DNA of 64,000 bases from Mobula hypostoma. Taxonomy: Eukaryota. The position numbers were made by a program, and so were the translations under genes. Of this stretch, positions 31,135-43,896 are shown piece by piece. The DNA lies in NCBI RefSeq assembly GCF_963921235.1, contig NC_086101.1:109926001-109990000 (forward strand). The letters are read 5' to 3'. Numbering within the stretch: the first letter of the stretch is position 1; the number at the start of each line of letters is the position of its first letter. The notes beneath the pieces are model-generated. The model did not search any database and was not told where the DNA came from. It worked only from the letters and a program-made list of their open reading frames with translations.

Positions 31135-31590
31135 ATCCACTCCTAGATTCACCATGTTGTGCATTCATAAATCCTCTTCTGTACACCACTGATGTAGCAC
31201 ATGGTTATTTGAGTTCCTGTTGACTTGGATCAGTATGGCCATTTTCATCTGACCTATCTCATTAACAAGGTGTTTTCTCCCACAGAACTGGCTGTCACTG
31301 GATGTTTTCCATTTTTTGCACAATTCCCAGACAGCTGTGCGTGAAAATCCCAGGAGATCAATAGAATCTGAGATACTCAAACCACTCTATCTGGCACCAA
31401 CAATCATTCCATGATCAAATTCCCTGAGATCCAATTTATTCCCATTCTGATGTTTGGTCTGAAGAACAACTGAACCTCTTGACTGTGTCTGCATGCTTTT
31501 ATGCATTCAGTTGCTGACAGATGATTGGCTGATTAGATATTTGCATTAACGAGGGGTGTACAGGCGTACTTAATAAAGTGGCCACCGAGT
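31135..31590 (-). mobile_element. Tc1-derived deletion element (5' of duplication unit A)
   Basis: Same family as 16540-17100; TAATAAAGTGGCCACCGAGTGTA terminus. Confidence 0.8.
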
Positions 31591-31805
31591 GTACCTGTAG
31601 CGCTGTCTGTAACCCTGAGAGAATCTGAACAGGACGTTGGACCCAGGGGAAGGGTTGGGAAATGATTGGAGGGTGTCAAAACCTGGAACGGATATGGAGA
31701 CAGAGAAATGTGGAAAGCAGAAGCAAAAACACAAAAACAGACGGGGAGGGAGACAGAGTCTGTGTGACCAAGTCAAAGGGTCTACACCCAGGGTGAGAAA
31801 GGTCC

Positions 31806-31848
31806 ATGGGTTCTACACTGTACCTGATGCTACTTCAACTCATGCTGG
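31806..31848 (+). CDS. Gene 2 leader exon MGSTLYLMLLQLML
   Basis: Kozak GTCCATGG, hydrophobic 14-mer, phase-1 donor G|GTGAGT at 31848/31849; joins in frame to ARSSGSG-FRVQQ of V-A. Confidence 0.82.
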
Positions 31849-32400
31849 GTGAGTAGACCCAGCTCTAGTCGTCACCCCTTCACTCAAGAGTTTGACAAGA
31901 GGGGAGGGATGTTTTCAATAGTGGGTGCGTCTGGGACCAGAGGGAATATCCTCAGAATAGAAGTAAGTCCCTTTACAACAGGGATGAGGAGGAATTTGTT
32001 CAGCCAGAGTGTGGTAAATCTGTGGAATTCATTGCCACAGACAACTGTGGAGGCTACGTCTCTGGGTGTACTTAAAGCAGAGTTCAATGGTTAATGACTA
32101 ATAAGGGTGTTAATGGTTAAGGGAAGAAGGCAGAAGAGTGGCTATGAGGGGGATAATAAATCAGCTGGGATTGAATGGTGGAGCAGACTCGATGGAACAA
32201 ATGGCCTAAATGTGCTCCTAGGTCTTATGGTGTAATGGTCACCTCTTCCTCCCCACCCCTCTTGTCTTAGGGTGAAGGTTAGTCCATCAGCTAGGGGGGC
32301 AGGGGCTTGTCTGGTGCCGAGTGTTACAGGCTGCTTGTCTGCCAGCTGAGATGCGGTCAGAGGTTCCCAAATGACTGTTTGCTCCCTCCCTTTCCCTCAG

Positions 32401-32769
32401 CACGGTCCAGTGGAAGTGGGTTTCGGGTGCAGCAGGCAAGCAACGTGGAAGGTAAAGAGGGTGAGTCCGTCACTCTCCCCTGCTCCTTCACGTACCCGGA
32501 CACCTCCACACCCAGACGCATCGACATTAGATGGAGAGTCGGTAACTACAACGGCACATATATATTCAGTTCCTTACTGAACCACACCACCCACGAATAC
32601 CGAGGCCGGATTGAGTTCCTGGGCTCCCCACTGCAAGACAAGACCGGTTCTATCCACTTACACCGGCTGAACCAAGTGGACTCCAACACCTATTTCTGTG
32701 GCATGACCATGTTTGGGGAAGAAAATAAGATGTGGCAGGGCGCCTCAGGGACCATCCTGAAAGTGAACG
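32401..32769 (+). CDS. Gene 2 IgV exon A, PILR-like
   Basis: Acceptor tttccctcag|, donor G|GTGAGC; 369 nt, phase 1-1, open; VTLPCSFTYP, IRWRVGNY, YRGRI, GSIHLHRL..DSNTYFC, WQGASGTILKVN. Confidence 0.92.
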
Positions 32770-32924
32770 GTGAGCTGGTGCTTCCAAGTTTTCTTCTTCT
32801 TAGCTGGATAATGATTCCAATCAATCTGAAAACACCCTTCCCCCAAAACACACACATGCACAGCCCTCCTGAGAGGCTCATTGACCAGGTGAATGTTTTC
32901 ATTTCCAAATGTTTCAACACCTGC

Positions 32925-33495
32925 ATACACTCAGTGGCCACCTCCTGTATCTAATACAGTGGCCACAGTGCGTATGTTCATGGCCTTCTGCTGCTGTAGC
33001 CCATCCACTTTGAGGTTTGATGTTTAGTGTGATCAGAGATGCTCATCTGCACACCAACACTGTAACACATGGCTACTTGAGTTACTGTCGCTTCCTGTCT
33101 GCTTGAACCCGTCTGGCCAACATCCTCTGAAATTTTTCAATAATAAAGCATTTTCACCCACAGAACCGTCAATCACTGGATTTTTTTTGTTTTTTTTCAC
33201 ACCATTCTCTGTAATCTTTAGCAATTGTTGTGTGTGAAGATCCCAGGAGATCAATAGTTTCTGGGATTCTGAATCCACTGTGTCTGGCAACAACAATTAC
33301 TCCATGGAGTCACTGAGTCAAAGTCACTGAGATCAAATTTCGTTCCCATTCTGATATTTGGTCTGTGCAACACCTTAACCTTTTGACCATGCCTGTGTTT
33401 TACACACTGTGTTGCTGACGCATGATTGGCTGATTGGGTATTTGCACTTATGAGGACCGTACAGATGCACCTAGTAAAATGGCCACTGAGTTTCC
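32925..33495 (-). mobile_element. Tc1-derived deletion element (5' of duplication unit B)
   Basis: CACTCAGTGGCCAC / GGCCACTGAG termini; same family. Confidence 0.8.
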
Positions 33496-33707
33496 AAGTA
33501 GCACAGTCTGAGAGTAAATGAGCAGAAGGTTGGGCTGAGTGGAGGTGCTGGGAAATGATTAGAGGGTGCTGAAATTAGAAACTGATGTGGACACAGAAAT
33601 GTGGCAAGCAGAAGCAATAACTCGGATACAGACGGGGAGTGAGGCAGGGTCTGTGTCACCGAGGCAAAGGGTTTATACCCAGGGAGGAGTGTCGGCCGAG
33701 AGGGTTC

Positions 33708-33750
33708 GTGAACTCCAGCCTGTGGCTGATGCTGCTGAAACTCACGTGGA
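33708..33750 (+). pseudogene. Inactivated paralogous leader exon of unit B
   Basis: GTGAACTCCAGCCTGTGGCTGATGCTGCTGAAACTCACG aligns to leader A; ATG>GTG, and the donor position reads ATGTTG. Confidence 0.7.
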
Positions 33751-34279
33751 TGTTGTGGACCCAGCTCGAGTTGCTCTAGACCCAGCTCAGGAGTTTGACA
33801 AGAAGGGAGGGGTGTTTCCAGTAGTGGGGGAGTCTGGGACCAGAGGGCACAGCCTCACAATACACCCTTTACAGAAGTGAGGAAGGATTTCTTCAGCCAG
33901 AGCGTGGTAAGTCTGTGGAATTCATGGCCACAGACGGCTGTGCAGGCCATGTTATTGGGCATATTTAATGTGGAGTTTCAAAGGTTATTGATTAGTAGAG
34001 GTGTCAACTGTTAAGAGGAGAAGGCTGAAGAATGGCCTTGAGAGGGATAATAAATTATCTGGGATTGAATGGCAGAGCAGACTCGATGGAACGAATAGCC
34101 TCTCTCCTAGGTCTTATGGTTACATGTTCCTCCCTCCCCTCTTTTCTTAGAGTGGAGTTTAGTCTACCAGCCAGGGCAGGGGCTTGTTAGGTGCTGAGAG
34201 TATTATGGACTTGTTGCCTGCAGGATGAGATGCGGTCAGAGGTTCCCAAATGACTGTTTTCTCCCTGCCTTTCCCTCAG

Positions 34280-34648
34280 CACGGTCCAGTGGAAGTGGGT
34301 TTTGGGTGCAGCAGGCAAGCAACGTGGAAGGTAAAGAGGGTGAGTCCGTCACTCTCCCCTGCTCCTTCACGTACCCGGACACCTCCACACCCAGACGCAT
34401 CGACATTAGATGGAGAGTCGGTAACTACAACGGCACATATATATTCAGTTCCTTACTGAACTACACCATCCACGAATACCGAGGCCGGATTGAGTTCCTG
34501 GGCTCCCCACTGCAAGACAAGACCGGTTCTATCCACTTACACCGGCTGAACCAAGTGGACTCCAACACCTATTTCTGTGGCATGACCATGTTTGGGGAAG
34601 AAAATAAGATGAGGCAGAGCGCCTCTGGGACCGTCCTGAAAGTGAACG
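34280..34648 (+). CDS. IgV exon B, near-identical to exon A
   Basis: Intact AG/GT, 369 nt, open; 7 substitutions versus A (R>W, H>Y, T>I, W>R, G>S, I>V, one silent). Confidence 0.85.
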
Positions 34649-34794
34649 GTGAGCTGGTGCTTCAAAGTTTCTGTTCTTGGTTGGATAATAATTGTGATGA
34701 GCCTGAAAACAACCGTCGTACAAACACCTCCCCAGAGGCTGTCTGACCAGCTGAATATTTCGACCAGTTCATAGTTTTCATTTCCGAATGTTTC

Positions 34795-35020
34795 AACGCG
34801 GCAGCGTGGTTAGCGTAATGCTGTTGCAGTGCCAGCGACTCAGGTTCAATTCCCGCTGCTGCCTGTCAGGAGGTTGTAGGTTCTCCCTGTGCTCACGTGC
34901 GTTTCCTTCAGGTGTTCCGGTTTCCTCCCACAGTCCAAAGACCTACAGGTTTGTAGATTGATTGATCATGCTGGCGTTGGGCTGAAAGGGTCTGCTACCA
35001 TGCTGTATCTCTAATTAAAA
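34795..35020 (+). mobile_element. tRNA-derived V-SINE-type element
   Basis: A/B-box-like head (GGTTAGCG...GGTTCAATTCCC) and core TCCGGTTTCCTCCCACAGTCCAAAGAC. Confidence 0.8.
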
Positions 35021-36172: not shown

Positions 36173-39100
36173 CCCATATGACTTTCATATGGGTGGTGGT
36201 TTTTACTGTAGTCAGTGAGGGTGCATGTTTACCTGTAGCAACATACAAAACACTAGAAGAGGGCTTTACTCTTTGGAGCAAAAGAGGATGAGAGTAACTT
36301 GGTAGAGGTGTATAAGATGCACACATCAAATGGACAGCCAGAGACTTTCCCCTAGGGTGGAAACGGCTGATACGAGGAGGTATCAATTTTAAAGTGAATG
36401 GAGGAATTTATGGGGGGGAGAGGGATGTCAGAGGCAGACCCAGCGAGTGGTGGGTGCGTGGAACACCCAGCCAGGGGTGGTGGCAGAGGCTGATACACTA
36501 CAGACATTTAAGAGACTCTTAGATAGGCACATGGATGATAGAAAAAAATGGAGGGCTATATAGGAGGGAAAAGTTAGATTGCTCTTAGAGTAAGATAGAA
36601 CAGTATAGCACATGAACAGGGCATTCAGACTACAATGTTGTGTCAAACCAACTAAAAAGGAATTGAAAAACACCCAAACTCTAATCTGTCCTACTTACAC
36701 AATATCCATATCCCTCCATCTTCCTCACATCCATGTGCCTATCCAAATGTCTCTTAAAAGCCTCTAATATATTTGCCTCTACCACTATAACAGGCTGTGC
36801 ATTCCAGGCATCCACCACTCTCTGAGTGAAAAACTTACCCCTCACACCCCCTCCTCTGAACTGACCCCCTCTCACCTTCAATGCAGCCTTCGCCACCAGA
36901 GGAAACAACCCAAGTTTATCCAGCCTCTCATATAACCATATAACAATTACAGCATGGAAACAGGACATCTCGGCCCTTCTAGTCCGTGCCGAACGCTTAC
37001 TCTCACCTAGTCCCACCGACCTGCACTCAGCCCATAACCCTCCATTCCTTTCCTGTCCATATATCTATCCAATTTAACTTTAAACGACAACATCGAACCT
37101 GCCTCAACCACTTCTGCTGGAAGCTCGTTCCACACAGCTACCACTCTCTGAGTAAAGAAGTTCCCCCTCATGTTACCCCTAAACTTTTGCCCTTTAACTC
37201 TCAACTCATGTCCTCTTGTTTGAATCTCATGATAGCACATACCCTCTAAACCAGGCAGCATTACAGCACAACACACCTCTTCTAGACCCTCTCCAAAGAC
37301 TCAACATCCTTCCTATAGTGGGGTGATCAGAGCTATATGCAATAATGCAGATGTGGCCTAGCCAGAATTTTTTATAAAGTTGCAATATAACCTCTTGACT
37401 TTTGGACTCGGTGTCTTGAATAATAAAAGCAAGCATTCCATAAGCCTTCCTAACCATCCTATTGACCTGTGTAGCCACTTTCAAGGAGCTATCCCAAGAT
37501 CCCTCTGCTCAGCAACACCGTTAAGGATCTTGCCCTTAACAGTGTACTGTCTCCTTGCATTTGCCCCACCAAGGTGCACCACCTCACATTTATCTGGGTT
37601 AAACCTGATGTGACATTTCTCTGCCCTTATCTGCAACAGTAGGTTGAAAGGTCAGCGTGTCATCGTGGGCCAAAGGGCCTGTGTCGTGCTGCAATGTTGT
37701 ATGGTCTGTATTCTAAGTCAATCGGTCAGGCTGCATCTGTAAAGAGGAATAGACGGTCACTGTTTTGAGATGAGACTCTTTATCCAGACTGAAAAACAGA
37801 GGGTAGAGAGCCAGGATAAAGAATGGGGTGGGGTGGGGAAGGTATAGAGCAGGAGCTGGTAAGCGATCGGTGGATCAGGGCAGGAGCGGTGACAGGAAGA
37901 TGGAGGAGTGGGGTAGTGGGAACAGAAAGAGAAGCTGGCAGGAGGTAGTTGGAGCTGACCACGGGCTGCAGGTTCAGCTTGACATCTGAAACTTTGACAA
38001 ACCTCTATGGATATGTAGTGGAGAGAACATCATTGAAATATTCCCACAATTTATGGACTCACTTTTAAGGACACATCATCTCATGTTCTCAATATTTCCT
38101 GCTTACTTATTAATATAATTTCTTTGCCTTTGTATACAAACAGTTTGTTGTCTGTGCACACTGGTTAAACACCCAAATTGGTGCATCTTCCATTGATTCT
38201 GTTATGGTTATTATTCTATTATGGATCTATTGAGTATGCCCCCAAGAAAATGAATCTCAGGGTTCATGGTGACATGAATGTAGTTTGATAATAAATTTAC
38301 TATGAACTTTGAACTTTTGAGAAGCAGGTGGATCATGGAACCAAGTGAGGGAAGTAGGGAGGGAAAATGGGAACAAAGGGAGGAACATTGTACTTTGACT
38401 CAAAACTCTGACCAACCATTTCCCTCCACAGATGCTGCTCGACCCGTTAAGTTTCTCCAGCAGTTTGTCTGCTGCTCCAGATTCCAGCACCGATGGTCCC
38501 CTCCTGGACTGTTGGTGCGGTTTCCAGTAGGAAGTAGGCAGTAGGTGGGACCTTGGGCAGGGGTGGAGAAATGATGGGAGGGTGTCGAAACCAGGTACGG
38601 ACGAGGAGACAGGGAGATGAGAACAGCAGAAGCAACAACACAGAAATAGACTGGGTGTGGGGCAGAGTCTGTGTCTCCGAGGGAAGGGGAATACATCTGT
38701 TCTCGCTGATTACCTGGATTCTGACAACTTGCAGTCACACTCATGCACAAGGAGAATGGATCAGCCCTGTCACTGACTTGTTCCGAAGCTTAGAATTGTC
38801 AAATTTTGTCTAGTAATCTGTATGCAACTTCATCTTTGTCCTGATCCTTGAGCAATTTCTAATTCCATCATTTGAATATACATTCAGTGGTCTCTTAGGT
38901 ACCTCCTGTACCTAATAAAGTGGCCACTGAGTGTATGTTCATCGTCTTCTGCTGCTGCAGTCCATCCACTTCAGGGTTTGACGTGTTGTGCTCTCCAAAA
39001 GGCAATTCTGCTCACCACTGCTATAGCACATGATTACTTGAGTTACTGTCGCCTTGCTGTCAGCTTGAACCTGTTTGACCATCCCCAGACCTCTCTCATC

Positions 39101-42080: not shown

Positions 42081-42216
42081 TATGGGCTGGTTTTCTGTCC
42101 ACAGTCTGAGGGCAGGGGCTTGTCTGATGCTAAGAGTATTATGGGTTGATTGGCTGCCTGGTGCAATGTGGTTGGAGGTTGCCAAAATGACAGTTTGCTC
42201 ACTCCCTTTCTCTCAG

Positions 42217-42599
42217 CGCAGACTGATGGATGTGGGTTCTGGTTGGAGAATCCGGCATACATAGAGGCTATAGAGAAGGGGACTACTACTCTTCTCTGCT
42301 CCCTCACTTACCCAGATATCTACACACCCGGAGACATTCATATCTCATGGAAAGTTGATCATTTCAGGACAGATATATTCACGTTTTTGCTAAACAAGAC
42401 AATTGGTGAATACCGAGGCCGGATCGAGTTGCTGGGCAACCGTCTTCGAGACAAGATGGGCTCCATCCGCTTACATCGGCTGAAAGGAAGTGACTCCAAT
42501 TTCTATTTCTGCCGTGTGACAATTTTGGAAGATCATCATCAGCTGATAGAATGGCAAAGCATCTCGGGGACGTTTCTGTCAGTGAGAAATGGGTCCTGA
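42217..42599 (+). CDS. IgV exon C, PILR-like, homologous donor lost, reads into NGS* stop
   Basis: Acceptor tctctcag| at 42216; open frame ...DIHISWKVDHFR...YRGRI...DSNFYFCRV...WQSISGTFLSVR; roughly half the residues identical to A by hand alignment; ATGGGT at 42589-42594 where A/B have GTGAGC; TGA 42597-42599. Confidence 0.75.
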
Positions 42600-43740
42600 A
42601 TCCTTACCCTGACCTCTGCTCTTGTCTGAAGGTTCTTTCAATTAATTCCCGTGCTTCAATCCAGCTTCATGTCTTCACATTTTCACACTGCAGGGCAACA
42701 GTCCACTCGGCCTACCTCGGCTGACTTACATCCGTATTAATTAACTCACATCCGTCCTACCGAAGGCTTTCGGCCTGAAACATGGACGGTACTTTTTTCC
42801 CCCAGAGATGCCGCCTGGTCTGCTGAGTTCCTCGAGCATTTAGCGTGTGCTCCTTGTATTTCCAGTATCTGAAGATTTTCTCCTGTCCGCACTAATCTCA
42901 TCTCCTGGCACTTGGCCCCCTCACCTCCTATCCATGGATAGTTCATGTACTCGTCTAGACCCTTCCTAAATATATCTGTCACTCTGCTTCCGCCCCACTC
43001 TCTGGCCGCGAGTTCCAGGTACTTACCACTCTCTGGGTGAGAAAGTTCCCTCTCAGACACCCTCCAAATCCCTTACTCCTCATCTTGACATTTTATATAT
43101 GAAGTTGTAAAATATTGTGAATGTGAAATGAGAAATATTTCCTTTTATCTACTCTGTCTGTACTCTCATGGATATGTGCACCTCAATCTTGTTCCTTTCA
43201 AACCACCTCCATTCCAGGGAATGAAGACCCATCACTGAAGCACATTGTCCCAGATAACATCCCATGAAGATTCTCTGCACCATCTCCAGTGAAAACACCC
43301 CTGTCCCGCTCTTCCTCAGCACTGCATGGTCCTGGCCTCATTAATGCACCCAGTGTTTTTCAGCTCACACTTATCCGGATTAAACTTCTTAGGTGATTTC
43401 CCAGCCTCATTTTACCAACACATTGGGATTGAGTATAGAAATGATTGCCCTCCACACTGTCAACAATTCCATTGATCTTTGCCTTGTTCTGCAGGGAACA
43501 CTGCAGCACAATACAGGCTCCTTGGCTCATGATGTTGTGCCAACCTTTTATCTTACTTTAAAATCAGTTTACACCCATCCCTCCTACATAGTCCTCCATT
43601 TTCCATCGACGAGGTCCCTAACTTCTAGTTTTGTAAAAGGCCCCTGATGTATCTTCCACTACCCCAGCTCCTCACATGGTGTCAGTTTCTCTGCCCTCTT
43701 CTCCTGTCCCGAAGTCACTGCGCTGAATTCCATCTCACAG

Positions 43741-43896
43741 GAGGCTCGTTGACCCCCAGAGTGACCGCAGTAACTCTAAGGATGCGGAAGCTGAGCCAAG
43801 GCTCCATCCTGATGATCCGGTCAGCGCTGGTTTTCGGACTGCAGGCAGTGGAGTGGACCGTGGGCACTTACCTGATCAAGAGGAGCCCAGTTGCAG
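43741..43896 (+). CDS. Candidate stalk plus transmembrane exon with intramembrane Arg (GSILMIRSALVFGLQAVEWTVGTYLIKR)
   Basis: Polypyrimidine acceptor catctcacag|, donor GCAG|GTAACT; 156 nt, phase 1-1, open; hydrophobic stretch followed by KR. Polar Q/E in the segment lowers confidence. Confidence 0.55.

Follow-up and report, generated by a model that had tools for sequence, protein, structure and literature searches.

Two neighbouring V-set exons of a PILR-like receptor locus in the ray Mobula hypostoma, which we call V-A and V-B, have been made near-identical by recent non-allelic gene conversion within an old tandem duplication. They lie in a window of 64,000 nucleotides (NCBI RefSeq assembly GCF_963921235.1, contig NC_086101.1, positions 109,926,001 to 109,990,000 of the forward strand), and all coordinates below are those of this window. 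The conclusion is well supported because V-A and V-B pair with each other in the tree, while the pairing of V-A with its positional counterpart in a stingray is rejected. A first-pass annotation, made from the sequence alone, had proposed an old duplication with a recent conversion tract, and that proposal is now backed by a step in sequence identity, by homogenised silent sites, by read-derived contigs, by a second organism and by clustering within species.

Layout of the locus and extent of the tract

Self-BLAST resolves two collinear tandem units on the forward strand, unit A (31165..32918) and unit B (33033..34797; also seen in the identity plot and in per-segment divergence), which are 77.9% identical across 1813 columns. 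Unit A runs from a TE copy through a promoter-like stretch, leader, CR1-like TE and intron to the V exon; the duplicated unit measures ~1.8-1.9 kb, and the two V exons are 1.9 kb apart. Exon V-A (32401..32769, forward strand) encodes a V-set Ig domain of the PILR/Siglec fold (Pfam V-set, E=3e-12), as exon V-B (34280..34648, forward strand) encodes a V-set Ig domain that carries the change W111R. Both exons are 369 bp long and of phase 1-1, with intact splice sites (cag acceptors and G/gtgag donors) and reading frames from 32403 and 34282.

In unit A the signal peptide is encoded by a leader exon (31806..31848, forward strand) that begins at an ATG, leaves one base of a split codon ahead of the GT donor at 31849-31850 (phase 1) and resembles the leaders of ray PILR-like proteins. 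The counterpart of this exon in unit B (33708..33750, forward strand) is probably dead, because alignment and direct reading show that GTG replaces the ATG and that TG stands where the donor GT would be. Further downstream on the same strand are a third V exon, V-C (42217..42590), which is ~72% identical to V-A and V-B and lies outside the conversion, and a stalk and transmembrane exon (43741..43896, phase 1-1) whose membrane span contains an arginine and which matches the activating-type ray PILR-like proteins P0156 and P0013 at 60-72% in tblastn. Among paired receptors, a charged residue within the membrane marks the activating form, and ITIMs mark its inhibitory partner. On reading the sequence of V-C, we did not see a GT at the homologous phase-1 donor.

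Three V exons thus stand upstream of the sole transmembrane exon, and the locus does not have a single-V-domain layout; RefSeq models of other rays join two to three such V domains per protein, and in the red stingray (Hemitrygon akajei) protein XP_072906125 the first domain, V1, is joined directly to the second, V2. Since the unit B leader has neither start codon nor donor and all V exons are of phase 1-1, V-A and V-B probably encode neighbouring domains of a single activating receptor of the PILR-like type, and the conversion would therefore have taken place between exons of one gene. The most likely predicted transcript would run leader - V-A - V-B - (V-C) - charged transmembrane exon. Our search for RNA found no sequencing run recorded as such, and the one run of possible RNA gave an unspliced 173-bp contig at depth 2.

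Within the two units, positions 32348-32784 and 34227-34663 align over 437 columns with 0 gaps and 9 differences (p=0.0206), in agreement with the hand count of the first-pass annotation. Seven of these differences are exonic (32424, 32583, 32590, 32733, 32739, 32747 and 32754), and the other two (32381 and 32388) are both in the upstream intron. The true start of the tract is 32347, one base earlier than first given, and the first mismatch 3' of it is at 32785. Alignment, identity plot and read contigs together place copy A at 32347..32784 (forward strand; exon V-A with 54 bp of the intron before it and 15 bp of the intron after it) and copy B at 34226..34663 (forward strand). In a sliding-window plot of 31165-32918 against 33033-34797, the check suggested with the original claim, identity steps from ~0.7 to 0.96-1.0 at 32347 and drops again past 32784, a rise from about 72% to 98% and back. 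The flanks, which had been judged by eye to be about 70-75% similar and to contain indels, indeed differ at p=0.19-0.29 in the collinear parts of the tandem unit as against p=0.021 in the tract (binomial P=7e-38), with 91 gap columns in the alignment of the upstream flank and none in the tract.

The earlier statement that the tract edges lie near the splice sites has to be qualified, because V-C and the stingray likewise conserve the final ~50 bp of the upstream intron; the 5' edge may reflect constraint in part, or a stretch of homology that lets conversion resolve there.

Orthology, a second organism and patchiness

V-A and V-B pair in the tree at 100/98 support, which is the within-species clustering that the first-pass annotation expected of conversion, and the AU test rejects a tree that constrains V-A to group with H. 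akajei V1 (p=0.0009). The AU tests do not separate V-B as donor, V-A as donor and independent clustering within species (alternatives p=0.13 each). When the intron 5' of H. akajei V1 is translated, it agrees better with the V-A flank (63% over 41 residues) than with the V-B flank (52% over 33 residues), and 11 consecutive residues of the better match correspond to DNA of which the V-B flank has lost a part; the positional orthology of V-A and V1 rests on these 41 translated intron residues, taken from a protein model.

A second organism, organism B, is ~2% diverged in the flanks and has both copies, each on its own flank. Its V-A copy carries the V-B letters at 32754 and 32785, and the difference at 32754 is a new change in the M. 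hypostoma lineage rather than a remnant. At the equivalent sites 32651 and 34530, M. hypostoma has T in both copies and organism B has C in both, the sole both-copy change among the differences listed; the comparison of contig differences covers those listed sites, and 34 others, including 15 of the 17 on the contig of the organism B V-B copy, lie outside it. The V-A copy of organism B keeps the family-consensus residues R85 and V101, where both copies of M. hypostoma have H and M (at these two residues the V-A copy alone is visible in organism B), and at residue 78 its V-B copy retains R, against Q in both M. hypostoma copies (here the V-B copy alone differs). We infer that the last homogenisation took place near or after the split from organism B.

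The conversion tract is probably patchy. Perfect runs of 158 bp and 142 bp separate the clusters of differences within it (P=0.018, uncorrected, for the summed length of the two longest perfect runs), the two copies of organism B share 32399-32539 only, with the 3' 275 bp on separate contigs, and the H. akajei V1 and V2 domains are identical at 24 of their last 26 residues as against 75 of the 96 before. Such a pattern would follow from several nested or patchy conversions, with the 3' cluster at 32733-32754 and the 5' differences as remnants outside the newest tracts. We give this reading somewhat less than an even chance, as the numbers are small, the P values are uncorrected, the stingray contrast is weak (Fisher P=0.16) and 32754, itself part of the 3' cluster, is a new change. 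It refines the main explanation rather than opposing it.

Taken as a whole, the account that we favour, and hold to be very probable, is one of old duplication in a PILR-like locus, short conversion, differences that are neutral or small patches, and a single gene. A leader-plus-V unit in a ray PILR-like receptor locus would have been duplicated in tandem long ago, and one or more short non-allelic conversions would then have overwritten ~440 bp centred on the exon and wiped out a divergence of ~25%. Most of the nine present differences would be recent mutations of effectively neutral kind, or else small patches left unconverted. The tract would be confined to the exon and the splice-adjacent intron because only there did the paralogues keep enough identity for heteroduplex formation and resolution.

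Selection, assembly and constraint

Six amino-acid changes distinguish V-A from V-B (R8W, H61Y, T63I, W111R, G113S and I118V), with one synonymous change at S115, and the count of six non-synonymous changes among seven exonic differences agrees with the first-pass annotation. An AlphaFold model of V-A (pLDDT 91) has PILR alpha and beta as its top six Foldseek matches (TM 0.84-0.87), and phmmer reaches PILRA at E=2e-9 over the full domain. In this model the changes map to the beginning of strand A (residue 8), the short C'' strand with its loop (residues 61 and 63) and the G strand (residues 111, 113 and 118). The earlier assignment of changes to the C'' loop and the G strand is therefore right as to placement, but the clustering of the differences exceeds chance only weakly (four inside 22 bp of the G-strand part, P=0.035, uncorrected).

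The further suggestion, that diversifying change followed the conversion, is not supported. With NG86 site counts for the exon of 282.7 nonsynonymous and 83.3 synonymous, six nonsynonymous differences to one synonymous give a dN/dS of 1.78 (binomial P=0.50, Fisher P=1.0), which is the neutral expectation, and the few differences look like chance; a high replacement share among very few sites is no evidence of selection. An adaptive diversification of the C'' and G-strand faces for different ligands, subsequent to conversion, might be read from the predominance of nonsynonymous differences and from the 22-bp cluster, and the family is of the immune paired-receptor type, in which the literature shows selection of this kind to be common. 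We nevertheless think it unlikely: besides the neutral ratio, two of the changes are CpG transitions, patchy tracts account for the clustering equally well, and the V-A exon shows no excess between M. hypostoma and organism B (5 nonsynonymous and 5 synonymous changes). At W111R, V-B has lost a tryptophan, and relaxed constraint is suggested to fit this change at least as well as adaptation, because the tryptophan is kept in all other aligned family members that have the segment.

A broader speculation, which we consider improbable, is that rays build multi-headed PILR-like receptors through leader-plus-V duplication, that recurrent patchy intragenic conversion keeps the membrane-distal heads alike, and that escapes in the G strand such as W111R are selected for ligand preference. 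If true, it would place conversion-plus-escape inside one polypeptide, and not between inhibitory and activating genes.

Both copies are real and not an effect of assembly. The read-derived contigs (k=31) stem from a de Bruijn graph whose bubbles had been popped. Since the assembly was probably made from the same sample as the best DNA run, that run is not fully independent of it. A shared contig over 32347-32732 has a depth of 24.5 against 13.6-14.9 for single-copy pieces, that is, ~1.7x to about double. Both upstream-flank contigs end at the equivalent of 32376, the flanks merging at the tract start at 32347, and separate contigs over 32703-33001 and 34582-34861 each hold their own 3' variant cluster and continue into their own flank with 0 mismatches. 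One of the contigs is mosaic, mixing letters of V-A with those of V-B.

A collapsed or mis-polished assembly, which the first-pass annotation had named as the finding that would undo its claim, is contradicted by the double-depth core and the copy-specific contigs. It might still be argued that pasting or polishing transferred one exon sequence to a diverged paralogue, or that the region was collapsed or falsely duplicated, as near-identical repeats 1.9 kb apart are liable to polishing errors and the same-organism contigs give one letter set at the three 5' sites as well as at 32583 and 32590. The core depth, the mismatch-free joins of both 3' variant clusters to their own flanks and the presence of both copies in organism B, with a shared unitig over 32399-32539, lead us to reject such an artefact, which we regard as very improbable.

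Exon constraint cannot explain the near-identity of V-A and V-B, because synonymous and intronic sites are homogenised as well and the domains are only 74-84% identical in protein sequence to V1 and V2 of H. akajei. Within the tract, 1 of 83.3 synonymous sites (P=6e-9), 1 of 54 four-fold sites (P=9e-6) and 2 of 68 intronic sites (P=3e-6) differ, each tested at the flank rate of 0.2345. Purifying selection alone, with an old duplication present everywhere and an exon held identical by strong constraint, is rejected as scarcely credible: exons are usually more conserved than introns, and the splice-adjacent intron is conserved too in V-C and the stingray, but silent and intronic sites here match no less well than replacement sites, the stingray version of the domain departs by 16-26% in protein sequence and V-C by 28% in DNA, and the orthologue pairing fails the tree test.

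Comparison with known receptor systems

The long homologous repeats of complement receptor 1 and the kringle IV repeats of apolipoprotein(a) are cases of intragenic homogenisation of tandem domain exons. The ray exons would be alike in that adjacent repeat-domain exons of one protein are kept similar by unequal exchange or conversion; the units of those two proteins are larger and often variable in copy number, whereas the ray tract is ~440 bp inside a 1.9-kb unit that has otherwise diverged.

The closest parallels in immune receptors are V-set exon conversion in the mammalian PILRA/PILRB pair (Wilson et al. 2006, cited in PMC13358205) and the conversions between Siglec-5 and Siglec-14 and between Siglec-11 and Siglec-16 (PMC5701461, PMC4042635). 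The ray exons share with these the domain fold, with PILR alpha and beta as best structural matches, a short homogenised tract on the ligand-binding V exon within units that have otherwise diverged, and the grouping of paralogues by species. They differ in that the ray partners are tandem V exons 1.9 kb apart, probably of one activating-type gene, whereas the PILR and Siglec partners are V exons of one inhibitory and one activating gene; in addition, the host is a cartilaginous fish. CEACAM paired receptors show concerted evolution of their N-domain exons (PMC2832619, PMC5112662, PMC7042247), again a homogenisation limited to Ig V-type exons, in fast-evolving clusters of immune receptors, and one that was detected through exon trees in conflict with flank or position. 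The CEACAM partners are genes whose signalling tails oppose each other, and pathogen-driven selection has been argued for them, whereas the ray exons offer no such evidence.

V-A and V-B are thus a new example of a known process and open no new question. As a clean case with sharp bounds, they extend to rays the exon-scale conversion known from mammalian PILR, Siglec, CEACAM and KIR genes, here acting on tandem domain exons of what is probably a single gene. V-domain trees in the ray PILR-like family will not follow orthology, a warning to annotators and phylogeneticists alike. Our literature search found no papers on PILR in sharks or rays, and in a database search with P0001 the closest match was the H. 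akajei protein itself, followed by one of 57% identity. In PILR, a conserved F-strand arginine serves sialic-acid binding (PMC13358205); V-A and V-B are without it, having a glycine after YFC, whereas V-C and most V2-type ray domains have the arginine (YFCR).

Tandem duplication and tract

V-A (32401-32769) and V-B (34280-34648), both 369-bp exons of phase 1-1, belong to the two units, A and B, of a collinear 1.9-kb tandem duplication in the window (31165-32918 versus 33033-34797; 77.9% over 1813 columns), each unit running from a highly repeated element through a promoter-like stretch, the region of the leader exon, a CR1-like element and an intron to the exon. Both encode a V-set Ig domain (Pfam PF07686, E about 1e-12). 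The top six structural matches of a model of this domain (built on a 22-sequence alignment; pLDDT 91) were human PILR alpha/beta (TM 0.84-0.87), with sialoadhesin and Siglec-15 next, and PILRA matches the whole domain in sequence (E=2e-9). In all runs the segments 31227-31607, 31862-32242, 32878-33512 and 33767-34147 reach contig word depths of 1e4 to 6e5, which marks them as interspersed repeats of very high abundance; since they are placed alike in units A and B, their insertion predates the duplication. At 38530-38700, 3.5 kb before V-C (the locus's third V exon), the promoter-like stretch of ~170 bp that precedes leaders A and B occurs a third time (~75% identity), with no recognisable leader exon behind it.

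In a sliding plot, identity between the units rises from ~0.7 to 0.96-1.0 at 32347 and drops after 32784, which bears out the tract limits of the first-pass annotation, save that the start lies one base before the 32348 given there. The gap-free alignment of the 437-bp segments shows nine differences (9/437; p 0.0206), two intronic and seven exonic, of which six are nonsynonymous and one synonymous, exactly as first counted by hand. The flanks on both sides are diverged, as had also been claimed, with p at 0.19-0.29: 0.24 in the transposable-element part upstream, 0.27 in the promoter and leader part, 0.19 in the CR1-like part, 0.24 in the intron immediately before the tract and 0.29 downstream.

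The upstream intron end (~50 bp before the exon) is conserved in V-C and in the red stingray, H. akajei. Between V-A/V-B and V-C (32347-32400, 34226-34279 and 42163-42216) it is better conserved than the exons, as it is between the Mobula sequence and H. akajei, where 18 residues of the translation agree throughout; this stretch is possibly a splicing element, for example a branch point and pyrimidine tract. Conversion would probably have started and resolved where identity between the units still sufficed, and the tract hugs the exon because exon and intron end were probably the only part of the unit with enough identity left. Conversion between old paralogues ordinarily behaves like this.

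Constraint, assembly and the reality of two copies

Protein constraint as the cause of the tract's identity is ruled out by identity at silent sites together with divergence of the exon from its relatives. Only 1 of 83.3 synonymous sites differs (P=6e-9 at the flank rate), 1 of 54 four-fold sites (P=9e-6) and 2 of 68 intronic sites (P=3e-6). The V-A/V-B exon is ~72% identical to V-C (42217-42590), and its domain shares 74% and 84% protein identity with the two V domains, V1 and V2, of the closest database protein, P0001 of H. akajei (XP_072906125); by these comparisons the exon is not slow-evolving.

Assembly collapse or mis-polishing is argued against by depth and by copy-specific contigs on their own flanks among read contigs (de Bruijn graphs, k=31) from the window's own organism (X1). 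There, both upstream-flank contigs stop at the position corresponding to 32376, and 32347-32732 is covered by a shared contig at depth 24.5 (13.6-14.9 in all single-copy pieces). The copies part again at 32703 and 34582, where the contigs 32703-33001 and 34582-34861 begin, each with the four 3' diagnostic letters of its own copy and 0 mismatches. Two copies that are real and almost identical would give this pattern. In the shared contig the letters form a mosaic, V-A's at the 5' sites and V-B's at 32583 and 32590; this reflects popped bubbles, so the absence of a variant from the contigs is meaningless.

Orthologues, donor and timing

Conversion predicted within-species clustering, and V-A and V-B pair with 100/98 support. 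In a tree of 21 ray V domains the arrangement is (H. akajei V1, (H. akajei V2, (V-A, V-B))), with 92/82 at the next node; forcing V-A to H. akajei V1, in line with positional orthology, lowers the log-likelihood by 27 units, and the AU test rejects it (p=0.0009). The flanks lend positional orthology of H. akajei V1 and V-A some support: the P0001 model begins within the intron upstream of V1, so that its translation can be compared, and it matches the V-A flank at 63% over 41 residues, including an 11/11 stretch, versus 52% over 33 residues for the V-B flank, where the DNA coding that stretch is partly deleted.

AU topology tests do not separate the donor directions (p=0.13 for both alternative topologies). 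Residues 1-96, in which V-A and V-B share 84/96 and 82/96 with H. akajei V2 versus 72/96 and 71/96 with V1, favour a V2-type (V-B) donor. Over residues 97-122 the two domains within each species resemble each other, with 24/26 shared in H. akajei, where this segment may also have been homogenised independently.

A second organism, B (X5 and X6, one sample), ~2% diverged in single-copy flanks as reckoned from the listed contig differences, has both copies, each on its own flank. The two copies share a unitig over 32399-32539 only; for the 275 bp at the 3' end of the tract each copy has its own contig, and these contigs, taken whole, show 11 and 17 differences from the window. At 32754 and 32785 the V-A copy of organism B shows the V-B letters, so these differences arose in the window's lineage. 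At 32651/34530 both window copies have T and both organism B copies C; its V-A copy has R85 and V101, the state of nearly all relatives, and its V-B copy R78, where both window copies have H, M and Q, respectively. Homogenisation may thus have occurred about the time of the split from organism B or later, possibly in both directions, and the tract divergence of 2.1%, close to the organism divergence of about 2%, agrees with this; the reading is suggestive only, because the patterns rest on the differences listed and 34 lie outside these, including 15 of the 17 on the V-B-copy contig. At 32769 the last V-A exon base in organism B is A rather than G, so that the split codon reads Thr instead of Ala and the match to the donor consensus is weaker.

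The first-pass annotation also proposed diversifying change after conversion, which may have occurred but for which we find no support, because the ratio of changes is neutral, the V-A exon differs from that of organism B by five nonsynonymous and five synonymous changes, and the clustering of differences fits patchy tracts. Under neutrality, six nonsynonymous differences out of seven have P=0.50, given 282.7 nonsynonymous and 83.3 synonymous sites (dN/dS 1.78, Fisher P=1.0). The reported clustering is present in mild form (P=0.018 to 0.035, uncorrected); patchy or nested tracts account for it no worse than selection, if not better. Polarised with relatives, V-B carries Y61, I63, R111 and probably W8, and V-A carries G113 and I118. 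Since W111 is kept in every aligned domain that has the segment, R111 of V-B seems to reflect either relaxed constraint or an altered function.

Gene model and known systems

In leader A (31806-31848) both an ATG and a phase-1 GT donor are present; its relic in unit B (33708-33750) has GTG for the ATG and TG for the donor, leaving V-B without a leader of its own, which suggests its use as an internal exon. The V-B splice sites are perfect despite the relic leader (33708-33752). All V exons are of phase 1-1, as is a transmembrane exon (43741-43896) with an arginine within its hydrophobic span and 60-72% identity to P0156 and P0013, ray proteins of activating type. RefSeq models of Mobula, Hypanus, Hemitrygon and Pristis have two or three such V domains per chain, and in P0001 V2 follows V1 directly. 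From these features we infer one gene, leader - V-A - V-B - (V-C) - transmembrane exon; among the runs searched, no spliced RNA supporting it was found. Nearest to the transmembrane exon are P0013 of H. akajei and P0156 of Hypanus sabinus, and an arginine in the span is of activating-receptor type.

At 42570-42600 V-C has GG, not GT, at the homologue of the V-A/V-B phase-1 donor, and its frame continues to a stop five residues past the domain's last strand; splicing at the sole GTGAGA close by would be in phase 0 and would meet a stop within the transmembrane exon. By its sequence V-C may be a skipped, terminal (secreted form) or dead exon. The position of the sialic-acid arginine of PILR and Siglecs (PMC13358205) is glycine in V-A and V-B; V-C keeps the arginine.

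V-exon conversion like that of V-A and V-B has been described for mammalian PILR alpha/beta (PMC13358205), for Siglec-5/14 and Siglec-11/16 (PMC5701461, PMC4042635) and for CEACAM and KIR genes. The conversion reported here is real and tidy, and the process itself already known; our search returned no literature on PILR-like genes in sharks or rays. In P0154, a three-V Mobula hypostoma protein (XP isoform X2), domains 135-258 and 260-383 are identical at 117/124 residues and mutual nearest relatives, which looks like a further instance in which tandem V exons were duplicated or homogenised recently. Another protein model, P0002 (667 aa), repeats a module of V domain, stalk and transmembrane segment three times almost identically, and appears to fuse several near-identical PILR-like genes of a tandem array into one prediction.
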